This document shows positions 16,701 to 22,388 of a stretch of DNA of 64,000 nt, one piece after another. The notes beneath the pieces were generated by a model. It did not search any database, was not told the origin of the DNA, and saw only the letters and a program-made list of their open reading frames with translations. The translations under genes and the position numbers were made by a program. Each line of letters starts with the position of its first letter. Within the stretch, counting starts at the first letter, position 1. The stretch comes from Bispira polyomma (taxonomy: Eukaryota): contig OZ287748.1 in assembly GCA_965649765.1 (NCBI GenBank), positions 59,210,001 to 59,274,000 of the forward strand, read 5' to 3'.

Positions 16701-19700
16701 GTGAATCTTTTGTAAGTTACTGATTACACCAGGAAATATTTGATACTCAGTATCGCTTTTACTGGCTTTTATTATAATTTTGGAATTTCTATCAGCAGTT
16801 TCAGTTTCAAACAATGTTCCCGGTCCGCCAATATAAAACTTACTAATCCCTGAAGTTGTAATGATGCATGTACGGTTTAACATTGTTATCTCATTATATG
16901 GCCTATCATAAACACCTGTGCTCCAGTTTTGAAACAATCCACTATGGCTTTCAATATACACCATGTCTGCTGTCTGTACATTTGCATCATTTTGCATTGA
17001 AATCACCTCAAACTTAGAAGCAGTCTTACATATATACGTCATATGGAAGATACGTGGATATTCATTCAAATCTTCTTGTGAAGACTTTAGATCTATTCCA
17101 TCAGAATCATCGTTGTTACTGCTTATTTCCCATCTTATTGAAGATTTACTGCCATATGTTTTGTCAAAATCAATTATGAATTTCCCAAACATCAAATCCG
17201 GTCTTTGGCGTATTGCCAATACATGTGAAGTATTCAGAGTATCCAGGTATTCTGTAGAATTGTATATACAGTTGTTGCAGTAGTACATAGAATCCTGTAG
17301 AACTAGCTCAACAACACTAGATTTTCTAATTTGGTTGGAGTATTTACACATTGGTTGATGGTCTGACAGGTAGGTTTTACAGAGAAGTCTTGACTTCAGA
17401 CCTGAAATATATGAAATTATTTGTGGACTATATATGATATATGATTATTATGAAAGAATTTTTAACGCACTTTATTGATGCTAGGCATCTTCTAAAGCTT
17501 AACAGCAGAATCATTGATCCAATCATTAAGTATATGTAAAGAAAAACTCTAACAGTCTAGCATCATAAAAGTCCTACAATTATTTTTGAGCTTTAATGTC
17601 AATGTTATACATTTTGAGTTGTTTATGTGAACATATTTAAGACAGGTTCATTATTATCACACACAAATTAACATGCTATCAGTATCTAATGGTCCTCAGA
17701 AGAGTGAAAAAACTGTGATTGTATGGAATTTTTTTTAATATGCTACTGCTAGTAGGGTGGCTCATGTGTAAGAGATTTGACATATTTCCGAGTGCCGTTA
17801 TATTACACTTGTTTTATATTCCGTCATGTATGTTATTTAAATCTTAATACAGCTAAACTATAAAGCTATACTACCTCGTACTTTTTGTGATAATAAGTAA
17901 ATTGATTTTTATTTAACAAAGCCTTCACTTTACCAAAGTCAGCTAGGGTACAGGAAATATGATAATAACCTTATGACATGGCTTTGCCTCATGACCACAA
18001 TTTTGAAATGTTGAAAGGATTGTCAGTGATTTGAGTCCCAGAATGAGCGGGAGATAGAACACCAGCAAAGAAGAATATAATAGAATCTTATGTATTACTC
18101 ACTTGTATCAGACATCATACAATAACTGCCCTGATCCTCAATACAACCTCTTAGGGCATGGTAAACCTGTCCTTGTGGGCAGTATTCTTCCTGTAATGTG
18201 TCTCTGTCACACAATACTTTGGTATTACAAGATTTACAGGAGCGGTAAGAGTCATCTCGCATATTGACACATGACATCACACACTCATCTTTAGGAATAA
18301 AAGACAAAGGTTTTAACGAAGCGGTAAAACAAAATCACCAATACTGTAATAGATCTTTTTGATGTCGAATTATTACTAAAATCCTTTTTGCACATTTATA
18401 AAACAAACTTTTTTCAGAAATAACAAAAAAAAGGTTATGTCCTAAAATTAAGTATACAATAATCAGACTAGGATATAATAAAAGATTAACATAAATTATA
18501 TATAACACATTTTAAAGTGAATATATATATTGTAAATCTTTAGAGCTTAGCATATACATGTTAAGATTCATGAAATGTTTTATGCCCAAAAGAATAGCAT
18601 GTTTACCATCTTGATAGCATAATCCTTGGTTCTCAAAAGATCGACACAGGGACCCATTGCACCCTACCGCGTCTGAAAGTATATCAGACAAAAAAGTCTT
18701 TCTACTATTAAACCTGATCTTGTGATATTTCCAAGATTGACATATTGTTATATATAGTCTCAGAGCCCCGGTTCGATCCTCGTTGCAGGGCTGGAGATTG
18801 TACCTTTGGACATGGTGCTTTACACAATAGTTGTCCCTCGCTACCCAGGTGTATAAACAGCTGCAGCTAAAGGGTGTTAGTCTTTGTACACCGTATGTGG
18901 CAGCAAGGCTAGTATGCTTCCTGAGAGAGCTGAGAATGAACAATTGGTTGACCAGTGGAAGAACCTAGGCTGGGGGTGTAACCTGTAAACTTAACTTAGA
19001 CCTCAATATATATATCAGATATCAGATTATAAACCTACACACATTTACATATAAGGTGGAGTTATAACATTTATTATGTTAGAAGAAAAATAAGGTCATA
19101 AAGAGTCGACTTTTTGAGAGAAAGAAGCTATAAGTTTATGTGAAAGAAAGCTCTTTTGCATCAATTCAAAATGTTAACAATATCATGTTATTTCTTGAAG
19201 GAGTAAAATTAACACAGAAATTAACACTCTGTCCACGTATATAGTTATATAGATTGCCTGGCTAATTAATGTGTCTAATATTGATGACTCACCACACTTG
19301 TCAGCACAAAACTTCCCAGTCAGGGTTCCATCTGGGTTTACAATAGGTGCTCTACATTCACCAAATTTTCCATCCTGTAAGAGTGCAACATTTCTTTATT
19401 TTCATTCAAATCAAACAGATAATAAATAATTATAAATGAACAATAATTTATTGTTATTAATTGACTGCTATTTTAAACAAAATTAAACCAATAAAAAATT
19501 AATATACATAAACAATAATTTAATGTGACTATCCCTTTCGACCTTTAGGGAAATTATCTCTGGGACCCGAGAGAAATTTTCTGGAATAGGTTACAGAGAG
19601 CTGGAGTCACTAAAACACACCACTGACTATGTCAGGCATTCAGTAATGGCCTCATGTATAATATTTTTAATGGGGAATTCCACTATACTAATAATTTCCT

Positions 19701-22388: not shown

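Follow-up and report, generated by a model that had tools for sequence, protein, structure and literature searches.

A stalked membrane protein with an FN2 remnant, a CBM14-type module and a tyrosine-rich tail as a candidate polysaccharide receptor in Bispira polyomma

The window, a 64,000-nucleotide stretch of Bispira polyomma contig OZ287748.1, contains a gene on its minus strand (gene A) that is predicted to encode a type I membrane glycoprotein with a transmembrane helix, a cytoplasmic tail and a candidate signal peptide. We propose, tentatively and as a plausible rather than a probable reading, that gene A is a stalked FN2-remnant/CBM14 receptor that binds a GlcNAc-type polysaccharide or matrix and signals through its tail tyrosines. 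The predicted exon structure, the tandem family to which gene A belongs, the identity of each extracellular module, and the motifs of the tail are presented below together with the alternative readings that they bear on.

Exon structure of gene A

Gene A was assembled from the sequence as nine open exons (22388-13288, minus strand) listed in Table 1. The predicted introns have GT-AG borders in all eight cases with matching phases, and the exon lengths sum to 2259 nt or 753 codons, corresponding to a product of about 752 residues. The initial annotation had described E2 to E5. These four exons are real in that they lie on the minus strand at the positions then given, are open, and have AG/GT borders, and the bounds of that annotation coincide exactly with the E5 donor (18103) and the E2 acceptor (20620). 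E2 has an AG acceptor and ends with VCGVTSNIDK directly before a GT donor, E3 starts with DGKFGEC directly after an AG acceptor, and the junction between them is in phase 0. The spacer exon E4 has no Pfam family match, and a 56% identical counterpart was found in copy Z, the closest intact-looking relative of gene A (tblastn, E 6.9e-4). E2 to E5 together hold 18 Cys, so full disulfide pairing is possible. Each exon was a separate query in the Pfam and other searches.

Table 1. Positions of the gene A exons and of tandem copy B in the window
Feature	Position	Strand	Content
E1, candidate first coding exon	22331..22388	-	Met and a 19-residue hydrophobic signal-like peptide
E2	20454..20620	-	Conserved Cys-Pro lead-in and first 28 residues of the FN2-derived module, CVFPF...VCGVTSNIDK
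E3	19293..19374	-	End of the FN2-derived module (DGKFGEC) and two-Cys spacer
E4	18607..18672	-	Three-Cys spacer exon, 21 residues, phase 1-1
E5	18103..18288	-	CBM14 (peritrophin-A / chitin-binding type 2) module, eight Cys, phase 1-1
E6	16604..17401	-	Family-specific domain, 265 residues
E7	14869..15207	-	Mucin-like stalk, Ser/Thr-rich, phase 1-1
E8	14031..14100	-	Transmembrane helix, then Arg-Arg
E9	13288..13780	-	Cytoplasmic tail, 163 residues, and stop codon
Copy B, pseudogenised tandem duplicate of gene A	24312..32869	-	Counterparts of gene A exons, with lesions

The first exon was sought with a script that screened for a Met, a hydrophobic core and a phase-1 donor. The screen returned one candidate, located in copy B, because the donor score of gene A was too low, and the gene A counterpart was taken up after the two copies were aligned. 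Its donor (GTTTGT, phase 1) is weak. The E1 regions of gene A and copy B are 93% identical in the aligned stretch and 73.5% identical over a longer block. This conservation supports E1 as a candidate first exon with a signal peptide.

Gene A and copy Z were compared by blastn within 17400-20700. Only E5, E3 and E2 aligned, in three HSPs with 86-88% identity; no intron aligned, and the 66-nt E4 was found only by tblastn. Every dN/dS ratio that was computed is below 1. Ratios between the young copies are 0.37-0.50 (0.37 for E5 of gene A and copy Z, 0.38 over 55 codons for E2 of gene A and copy B, and 0.46-0.50 for E6), and the ratio against copy D is 0.28. The exon-only alignment and the dN/dS ratios indicate that the gene A exons are real coding sequence. 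Selection on the family appears to be moderately purifying only, with a dN/dS of about 0.4-0.5.

A young tandem family with decayed copies

By sequence comparison, gene A belongs to a young, partly decayed birth-and-death tandem family. The family has at least eight loci, seven of them within 150 kb, and lesions were found in at least four of the eight. Copy B has no counterpart of gene A 18211-19554 (E3, E4 and the 5' part of E5), its E5 remnant carries an 8-nt deletion, its tail has a frame-changing indel, and its stalk exon contains a 73-bp tandem array. A frameshift disrupts the CBM14 exon of copy D, stop codons interrupt the C7 copy, and the copy at 59.173 Mb contains a single in-frame TGA and gives its match as two separate pieces. 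Copy Z is about 80% identical to gene A in its outer part and has an unrelated tail (best tail BLASTP E 3.7), which is the usual tail of the family. DNA similarity between gene A and copy Z ends at the end of E7. The order FN2, CBM14, membrane helix, Tyr-rich tail recurs in copy Z and in gene C, and both the FN2 and the CBM14 modules of gene C score as canonical. The tandem family context and the differing tail of copy Z were absent from the initial annotation.

The broken neighbors raise the idea that gene A is itself silent or dying and is open only by its youth. The adjoining copy B is broken in at least three ways, two further copies carry the frameshift (D) and stop codons (C7) described above, and the first-exon donor is weaker in gene A than in copy B. 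None of the three listed sequencing runs is RNA; each holds 88-92% of the words of a mostly intronic stretch, so all three are DNA. However, all nine exons of gene A are open and canonically bordered, their summed length is a multiple of three, dN/dS is below 1, and the introns of gene A and copy Z have diverged beyond alignment while their exons have not. We consider it quite improbable that gene A is a silent or dying copy.

E5 is a CBM14-type module

E5 is a CBM14-type module by profile comparison and predicted fold, although it scores below the Pfam cut-off. The score against Pfam CBM_14 (PF01607) was 13.7 bits compared to a cut-off of 22.1 (E 0.071), and this was the sole Pfam match of E5. 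CBM_14 was also the match for all five same-position paralog exons, which scored 18.1, 14.0, 14.2, 18.8 and 32.9 bits. Only the gene C exon (32.9 bits) was over the cut-off. CBM_14 was the sole family for four of the five, and the L016 exon had an equally weak match to DUF6686. A related exon elsewhere (L020) scored 23.4 bits. Profile-profile alignment (hhalign) of five sub-threshold cluster exons with 12 canonical CBM14 modules of the same genome gave a 92.5% match with an E of 4.8e-7 over 42 columns.

Solved structures were searched by hmmsearch with eight sequences. The matches included 8in3 (E 1.1e-7), 4z4a (E 4.2e-6) and 7bwe (E 0.0023), and 11 of the 13 were chitin-binding modules or chitinases. 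The five sub-threshold sequences gave five matches, three of them chitin-type with 4z4a first (E 0.005), and E5 as a single sequence gave none against the solved structures. An AlphaFold model of E5 computed from an 8-row alignment had a pLDDT of 76.8. Foldseek ranks 1-13 for this model were all chitin-binding domains with probabilities of 0.94-1.00, and rank 14 had a probability of 0.13. The top 13 comprise CHIT1, Avr4, EHEP, the NMR structure of the CHIT1 CBM14, tachycitin, Der p 23 and Blo t 12. No Foldseek row reached an E of 0.001, the best being 0.012. The model and the CHIT1 CBM14 superimpose with a TM of 0.69 and an rmsd of 1.5 Å over 49 columns. The chitin-binding type 2 nature proposed in the initial annotation is borne out by the profile-profile match, the structure-profile search and the predicted fold.

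The six-Cys framework with canonical CBM14 spacing is present in E5. Cys 6, 20, 26 and 36 pair with canonical Cys 1-4 in the hhalign alignment, and Cys 48 and 56 are invariant in all eight related exons. Two extra Cys at positions 2 and 17 are likewise invariant in the eight exons. The ChtBD2 spacing noted earlier fits, but the count of six does not, as the module has eight Cys. E5 keeps two of the four usual aromatic positions. The aromatics before canonical Cys 2 and after Cys 4 are kept in 8/8 related exons, the aromatic pair between Cys 2 and Cys 3 is absent in gene A, copy Z, the C7 copy and L016, and the aromatic after Cys 5 is absent in all eight. The four usual positions are those presumed to contact chitin in CBM14 modules. 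Because the binding residues are incomplete, chitin binding by E5 is doubtful. The two invariant aromatics suggest, at the level of sequence, that E5 has kept a sugar-type face.

E5 therefore shares its six-Cys framework, predicted fold and two aromatics with CBM14 proteins such as human chitotriosidase, Avr4, tachycitin, Der p 23 and Aplysia EHEP. It differs from them in its two extra Cys, in having neither the aromatic pair between Cys 2 and 3 nor an aromatic past Cys 5, and in being part of a membrane-spanning protein that carries a signalling-type tail instead of a secreted matrix protein or chitinase.

E2 and E3 encode a cut-down FN2 module

E2 alone matched Pfam fn2 (PF00040) with 27.2 bits (cut-off 22.2, E 3.8e-6) over profile positions 1-35 of 42, in agreement with the FN2 identity assigned in the initial annotation. 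The paralogous exons were all over the cut-off (5/5), with scores of 27.2 (copy B), 28.9 (copy Z), 36.3 (gene C), 24.0 (copy D) and 38.8 bits (L032 copy). E3 alone had no Pfam match, which is expected because it contributes just 7 profile positions. The short loop and the absent Trp that had been noted were confirmed by alignment: about 19 residues retained in gene C and the L032 copy are missing from gene A, copy B and copy Z. The missing loop includes a Trp and the canonical third Cys, and a family-specific extra Cys is found there instead. The end of the module encoded by E3 reads DGKFGEC in gene A and KKWGEC, containing the usual Trp, in copy Z and the L032 copy, and the gene A remnant is without both usual Trp residues.

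The canonical FN2 framework of four Cys paired 1-3 and 2-4, with a Trp before the third Cys, is not found in gene A. Gene A keeps the Cys-x-Phe-Pro-Phe, Tyr and Tyr-x-x-Cys elements and the Asp-x-Lys-aromatic-Gly-x-Cys end of a canonical FN2. In contrast to a canonical FN2, it has lost residues that include the Trp-Cys supplying the first disulfide partner, and a phase-0 intron interrupts the module at profile position 35. The FN2 remnant of gene A may not adopt the FN2 fold. FN2 occurs in fibronectin, in MMP-2/9 and in the mannose receptor family. The earlier description of FN2 as best known from vertebrate proteins needs qualification, as the animal's own genome contains no fewer than 39 fn2 matches above the threshold. 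One paper likewise describes FN2 modules as ubiquitous in vertebrate and invertebrate extracellular proteins (PMC6211748).

The E6 domain and the stalk

An exhaustive HMMER search with a 255-residue ORF inside E6 (16587-17351 of the window) found only 8 relatives among 1.84 billion representatives. These relatives are 104-284 aa long and 29-38% identical, and they look like single-exon ORFs running through the same donor. All are ENA singletons, a single 1.41-Mb contig carries six of them, and no annotated full-length protein is among the eight. The animal's own genome has 10 E6 matches in 8 loci. The E6 model had a pLDDT of 74.1. VIA-align of the second half gave best Z scores of 7.1 (CUB, 1spp) and 6.9 (Kremen) and many CUB rows, all at Z below 8. 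Foldseek gave a TM of about 0.2 to many unrelated sandwiches and nothing clear. Atlas leads for E6 did not exceed 0.80; CUB clusters at 0.75-0.78 were among them and are to be taken as leads only, and E6 had no Pfam CUB match. The predicted structure weakly suggests that the C-terminal half of E6 is a CUB-like beta sandwich. A match of E6 to DUF2714 (20.8-21.0 bits, cut-off 23.9) was rejected as compositional.

Ser or Thr accounts for 50 of the 112 residues of the E7 stalk. A CBM14 module, typical of matrix proteins, on such a stalk would also suit a structural anchor that joins the cell surface to the animal's own chitin-containing matrix and connects through the tail to the cytoskeleton. CBM14 modules are plentiful in this genome, with at least 53 CBM_14 matches. 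An anchor is expected to be conserved, yet the E6 domain has only the eight relatives, the local copies decay rapidly, and the canonical aromatic set of E5 is incomplete. A purely structural role would be a surprise to us.

A tyrosine-rich tail with gene A as its only intact-looking carrier

The E8 helix has a Kyte-Doolittle mean of 2.52 over 19 residues, is conserved in copy B, and is the only such hydrophobic segment between E7 and E9. The E9 tail contains seven Tyr, six of them within the short motifs YENM, YETS, YYNE, YMNQ, YAVL and YATL, and copy B retains all six. The type I membrane layout and tyrosine-rich tail of the initial annotation were recovered in these two exons. This tail type occurs at only three places in the genome, gene A, copy B and the broken C7 copy, and gene A is its only intact-looking carrier.

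ITIMs have a hydrophobic residue or Ser at -2 of YxxL/V/I, ITSMs read TxYxxV/I, and ITAMs consist of two YxxL/I spaced 6-12 residues apart. None of the three is present in strict form in E9. Position -2 of NEYAVL is Asn, position +3 of TEYATL is Leu, and 13 residues separate the two YxxL motifs, a distance beyond the usual ITAM spacing. YENM, YAVL and YATL fit a Tyr-x-x-hydrophobic pattern, and the tail also holds YxN/YxxM-type motifs.

Tyr-x-x-hydrophobic motifs are compatible with an endocytic or scavenger lectin-type receptor that resembles the mannose receptor and uses YxxL/YxxM as sorting signals for uptake. PMC12321717 describes the mannose receptor architecture as FN2 plus carbohydrate-type modules, one helix and a tail, and by this description gene A shares with MRC1 and Endo180 a type I layout, an FN2 and a carbohydrate-type module, and a single helix followed by a Tyr-based tail with YxxL/M motifs. 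Gene A differs from this family in using CBM14 as its sugar-type module, in its mucin stalk, and in its much longer tail. No ricin-type or C-type lectin Pfam match was found on E2, E5, E6, the tail or the gene C exons in two scans, one at E <= 10 and one at E <= 1, and a tail of 163 residues and six motifs is longer than expected if it served in sorting alone. An uptake receptor of this kind is rather unlikely.

Comparison with other receptor families

FN2 is a small disulfide module related to the kringle, and gene A resembles Kremen (kringle, WSC, CUB and helix) in its order of small disulfide, carbohydrate-type and CUB-like modules before a helix. For the second half of E6, the Kremen CUB ranks with the best structural matches, at a Z (6.9) that may reflect just a common arrangement. 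However, gene A has no sequence match to kringle, WSC or CUB, and the likeness to Kremen is a resemblance and not membership. Paired or tail-swapped ITIM/ITSM/ITAM receptors share with gene A the single helix, several Tyr-x-x-hydrophobic motifs, tandem duplicates, and a paralog with another tail. They differ in that the gene A ectodomain is neither immunoglobulin-like nor lectin-like and its motifs depart from the strict forms.

The likeness to paired receptors admits a reading in which gene A is a fast-evolving recognition receptor, its FN2 and CBM14 modules serve as disulfide scaffolds for ligands other than chitin, and gene A and copy Z form a pair. By analogy, such an arrangement would be that of immune or allorecognition families. 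It would account for the birth-and-death history (eight loci, at least four with lesions), the dN/dS of 0.4-0.5 among young copies, the loss of the usual ligand-contact aromatics from both FN2 and CBM14, and an ectodomain that gene A and copy Z have in common while their tails differ. But dN/dS stays below 1 in all comparisons made, and the invariance of two CBM14 aromatics in 8/8 exons suggests a kept sugar-type face. We regard recognition of non-chitin ligands as possible but less likely than not.

Proposed function of gene A

Our preferred reading remains a polysaccharide or matrix receptor. From the outside in, the product would be ordered as signal-like peptide, FN2 remnant, Cys-rich spacer, CBM14, E6 domain, mucin stalk, helix and tail. 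The tip, consisting of the FN2 remnant and CBM14, would be held off the cell by the stalk and would bind a GlcNAc-type polysaccharide or a matrix component. Occupancy or clustering may then lead to phosphorylation of the tail tyrosines, and the phosphotyrosines could serve as docking sites for SH2-type adaptors (YxN and YxxM types) or for sorting adaptors (YxxL type). Because gene A is the sole intact-looking carrier of its tail and copy Z has the same outer part with another tail, the pair may report the same ligand through two outputs. The narrower idea that gene A is a membrane sensor of chitin or GlcNAc polymers, with CBM14 and a cut-down FN2 wired to a phosphotyrosine tail and paired with copy Z, is unlikely on present evidence.

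To our knowledge, chitin-binding type 2 modules occur almost only in secreted matrix proteins, chitinases and small defence peptides, and cell-surface chitin perception in animals is poorly defined. New domain combinations are frequent on invertebrate receptors. A literature search found no paper joining fibronectin type II with peritrophin or FN2 with ChtBD2, and no CBM14 transmembrane chitin receptor was described in the titles and abstract openings of the matches listed. The weight of these observations is limited, as FN2 and CBM14 are both common in this genome and the family is young and decaying. The gene A architecture combines a CBM14 module and an FN2 remnant with a mucin stalk, a membrane helix and a tail of several tyrosines, and gives a concrete and testable candidate for chitin perception at the cell surface. 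If gene A does sense chitin or GlcNAc polymers in this way, it would represent a lineage-specific means by which invertebrates detect chitin of fungi, of prey or of the animal's own matrix. Copy Z shares its tip but not its tail with gene A and provides a natural contrast. The FN2 module was pared down within one cluster, losing its loop and Trp-Cys and retaining its Pfam-level signal.

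Gene A domain organization

Gene A encodes a predicted type I membrane protein of modular build. At the tip of its mucin stalk are an FN2 remnant and a CBM14-fold module, and it has a multi-tyrosine tail. The gene sits in a young birth-and-death cluster. The window DNA is eukaryotic and AT-rich (GC 0.28–0.39) and comes from a 1.035-Gb assembly, where it spans G000:C1:59210001-59274000. The exons were read one at a time on the minus strand. All introns start with GT and end with AG, their phases are consistent (1 at E1/E2, 0 at E2/E3, 1 from E3 through E8, and 2 at E8/E9), and the exon lengths add up to 2259 nt, exactly 753 codons. 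The feature borders set by the initial annotation coincide with the E5 donor (18103) and the E2 acceptor (20620). None of the three sequencing runs found is an RNA run, and the splicing pattern is predicted from sequence logic and comparison. E1 is only a candidate first exon. A and its paralog copy B share 93% identity around it, compared to 73.5% for the longer surrounding block, and B has the stronger donor (GTATGT, against GTTTGT in A).

Coordinates of the gene A exons and of related cluster features
Feature	Coordinates	Strand	Content
E1	22388-22331	-	Met and hydrophobic 19-mer
E2	20620-20454	-	FN2-derived module, first part
E3	19374-19293	-	FN2-derived module end and spacer
E4	18672-18607	-	spacer with three Cys
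E5	18288-18103	-	CBM14-type module, eight Cys
E6	17401-16604	-	family-specific domain, 265 residues
E7	15207-14869	-	stalk, mucin-like
E8	14100-14031	-	membrane helix
E9	13780-13288	-	tail including stop codon
Copy B	24312-32869	-	pseudogene
Gene C tail	61973-62533 (in window)		acidic, Tyr-rich
Gene C helix	62556-62774 (in window)
Gene C central exon	63372-63998 (in window)
Copy Z helix/tail area	L033:2404-2988 and L033 about 3270-3347		G000:C1, 59.197-59.198 Mb

Copy B is 74–91% identical to gene A at the DNA level, introns included. Copy Z, which sits just left of the window with its E2 straddling window positions 9–50, is the more useful comparator for the gene A exons. Blastn of A against Z within 17400–20700 gave alignments only at 18090–18305, 19258–19380, and 20443–20563, which are E5, E3, and E2, and no intron aligned. 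The 66-nt E4 was recovered by tblastn only (56% identity, E 6.9e-4). The Nei-Gojobori dN/dS was 0.37 for E5 between A and Z (61 codons), 0.38 for E2 between A and B (55 codons), 0.46–0.50 for E6 among A, B, and Z, and 0.28 for E6 between A and D, where dS is saturated. These ratios, all below 1, and the whole-codon exon sum speak against the rival reading of gene A as a silent copy.

The FN2 module

E2 alone passes Pfam fn2 (PF00040), scoring 27.2 bits against a cut-off of 22.2 (E 3.8e-6) over profile positions 1–35 of 42, and E3 contributes the closing Asp-Gly-Lys-Phe-Gly-Glu-Cys. All five paralogous E2-type exons exceed the cut-off (B 27.2, Z 28.9, C 36.3, D 24.0, and the L032 copy 38.8 bits). 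None of the three E3-type exons tested matched Pfam, as expected for a piece spanning only 7 profile positions. E3 starts with Lys-Lys-Trp-Gly-Glu-Cys in Z and the L032 copy, and thus has the usual Trp there. In the alignment, gene C and the L032 copy keep the complete loop, which closes with Trp-Cys and lies after the second Cys and before a family-specific Val-Cys-Gly. About 19 loop residues are absent from the FN2 of A, B, and Z, so in gene A the canonical third Cys is gone, together with its Trp; Pfam fn2 aligns the family-specific Cys of A at the canonical third-Cys place. The initial description of an FN2 with a short loop and no Trp was correct, and the cluster comparison shows this loss to be derived.

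FN2 is described as ubiquitous in vertebrates and invertebrates (PMC6211748), and fn2 is common in this genome, where at least 39 matches exceed the cut-off. One open frame of 1368 residues on another contig (G000, C9:36837717-36841190) holds 14 tandem fn2 matches about 270–290 nt apart and would be a giant FN2-repeat protein.

The CBM14 module

The sole Pfam match of E5 is CBM_14 (PF01607), at 13.7 bits and thus below the cut-off of 22.1 (E 0.071). A six-frame genome search with E5 found 16 places, and the Pfam scan covered 10 of the 15 non-self E5-like exons. CBM_14 was listed for eight of these 10 and exceeded the cut-off in two (the gene C exon, 32.9 bits, and locus L020, 23.4 bits); the other two had no Pfam match. 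The same-position exons of the cluster paralogs all list CBM_14 (5/5; 18.1, 14.0, 14.2, 18.8, and 32.9 bits). The exon at locus L016 has an equally weak DUF6686 match beside CBM_14.

Eight invariant Cys are common to eight related exons. A profile of these eight found 13 matches at E up to 10 among solved-structure sequences, 11 of them chitin-binding modules or chitinases, including 8in3 (1.1e-7), Avr4 (4z4a, 4.2e-6), and a squid beak protein (7bwe, 0.0023); the other two were eS27 and a latrophilin-like protein. Because two of the eight exceed the Pfam cut-off by themselves, the search was repeated with the five sub-threshold cluster exons. 4z4a was still the top match (E 0.005), followed by eS27 (0.082), 8in3 (0.15), 7bwe (0.5), and 2i71 (1.0). 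The single E5 sequence matched no solved structure. When hhalign compared the five sub-threshold exons with 12 canonical CBM14 modules from this genome, the probability was 92.5% (E 4.8e-7, 42 columns), and E5 Cys 6, 20, 26, and 36 paired with canonical Cys 1–4.

The AlphaFold model of E5, built from an 8-row alignment, has five strands and a pLDDT of 76.8. Foldseek ranks 1–13 against the PDB are chitin-binding domains throughout (probability 0.94–1.00), and rank 14 drops to 0.13. They include human chitotriosidase (TM 0.69, rmsd 1.5 Å, 49 columns), Avr4 proteins, Aplysia EHEP, the CHIT1 CBM14 NMR structure, tachycitin, Der p 23, and Blo t 12. The best E value was 0.012, and none of the rows reached 0.001. 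We conclude that E5 is a divergent CBM14 with eight Cys. The ChtBD2-like type proposed at the outset is thus supported by hhalign, the profile, and the predicted fold, but the module has eight Cys rather than six.

CBM14 modules usually have four aromatic positions. With positions assigned from general knowledge of the family, all eight exons keep the aromatics that precede canonical Cys 2 and follow Cys 4. The exons of A, Z, L016, and the C7 copy lack the pair between Cys 2 and 3, and none of the eight has the aromatic after Cys 5. Chitin binding by E5 is only putative because this set is incomplete. The gene A tip may bind a glycan or matrix; alternatively, gene A would be a recognition receptor whose modules have lost chitin or collagen binding.

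Nine further loci (L017–L019 and L021–L026, on C2, C4, C5, C6, C12, C13, and C14) have short exons limited to the first half of this eight-Cys variant of CBM14. They read Cys-x3-Cys ... Asp-Gly-x-Tyr-Gln-Ser-Cys-x2-Cys ... Cys and stop after the following Cys, which suggests a wider gene family with an intron-split module.

Central domain, stalk, and tail

A search of 1.84 billion representatives gave only eight relatives of E6 with an E value of 0.001 or less. These proteins (P0001–P0008) are unnamed ENA singletons from single-exon ORFs, and six lie on one 1.41-Mb contig, which points to a comparable tandem cluster in another organism. The E6 model (pLDDT 74.1) had no clear Foldseek match. 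VIA-align of residues 131–265 retrieved CUB domains (1spp, Z 7.1; Kremen, 6.9; and many others), every Z being below 8, and Atlas leads to CUB clusters scored 0.75–0.78. A CUB-like sandwich in this second part is a weak lead.

Ser and Thr make up 45% of E7 (50/112 residues). Between E7 and E9, the one strongly hydrophobic segment is E8 (mean hydropathy 2.52), whose last residues are Arg-Arg. Six of the seven tail Tyr lie within the motifs YENM, YETS, YYNE, YMNQ, YAVL, and YATL. None of the six fits ITIM or ITAM in the strict sense, and copy B keeps all six. The tail would give a tyrosine-based output; rival readings of this architecture are a lectin-type endocytic receptor resembling the mannose receptor family and a matrix anchor. 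The initial observation of the domains was confirmed, and its interpretation is supported in part. Gene A combines known parts in a new way and does not amount to a new kind of system.

The gene cluster

The E6 domain occurs at eight loci (10 matches), seven on C1 within 59.16–59.31 Mb and one a broken copy on C7. Copy B is a pseudogene. A 1.34-kb deletion removes the counterpart of A 18211–19554 (E3, E4, and the 5' part of E5), the E5 remnant has an 8-nt deletion, and an indel changes the frame of the tail. Its stalk exon is filled by a tandem array (26085–27542) in which a 73-bp unit recurs 20.2 times (94% matches) and which breaks the frame since its period is not divisible by three; the array coincides with a GC-skew spike at 26001–28000. 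Copy D has a frameshift within its CBM14 exon.

The gene C central exon matched no Pfam family. Beyond the right edge of the window (L035:6042-6849, L036:689-964), gene C encodes an FN2 with the complete loop (36.3 bits) and two CBM14 modules that score 32.9 and 18.6 bits. The arrangement of FN2, CBM14, helix, and Tyr-rich tail thus recurs with canonical-scoring modules. A gene C intron (L035:629-5518, minus strand) holds a large retroelement with long open frames that by eye look gag-like, reverse-transcriptase-like, and recombinase-like.

The copy Z ectodomain is about 80% identical to that of gene A (tblastn 56–84%; E2 84, E3 74, E4 56, E5 79, E6 80, and stalk 62%), whereas its membrane helix and tail are unrelated. 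DNA similarity stops at the E7 end, and the best BLASTP E value between the tails is 3.7. The Z tail type is common to four other cluster genes. The A type is confined to A, B, and the broken copy on C7, which leaves A as its sole intact-looking carrier. By sequence, A and Z look like a paired-receptor arrangement and may form a two-output pair.

An element of about 280 bp (21396–21672 and 10845–11110) lies upstream of A and of Z in opposite orientation with 70% identity. This element and an adjoining 68-bp piece are the sole similarity between the two upstream regions. Elsewhere in the window, several long ORFs (620–1930, 39284–40459, 46957–47596, 53233–54678, and 55179–58434) look by eye like retroelement fragments.
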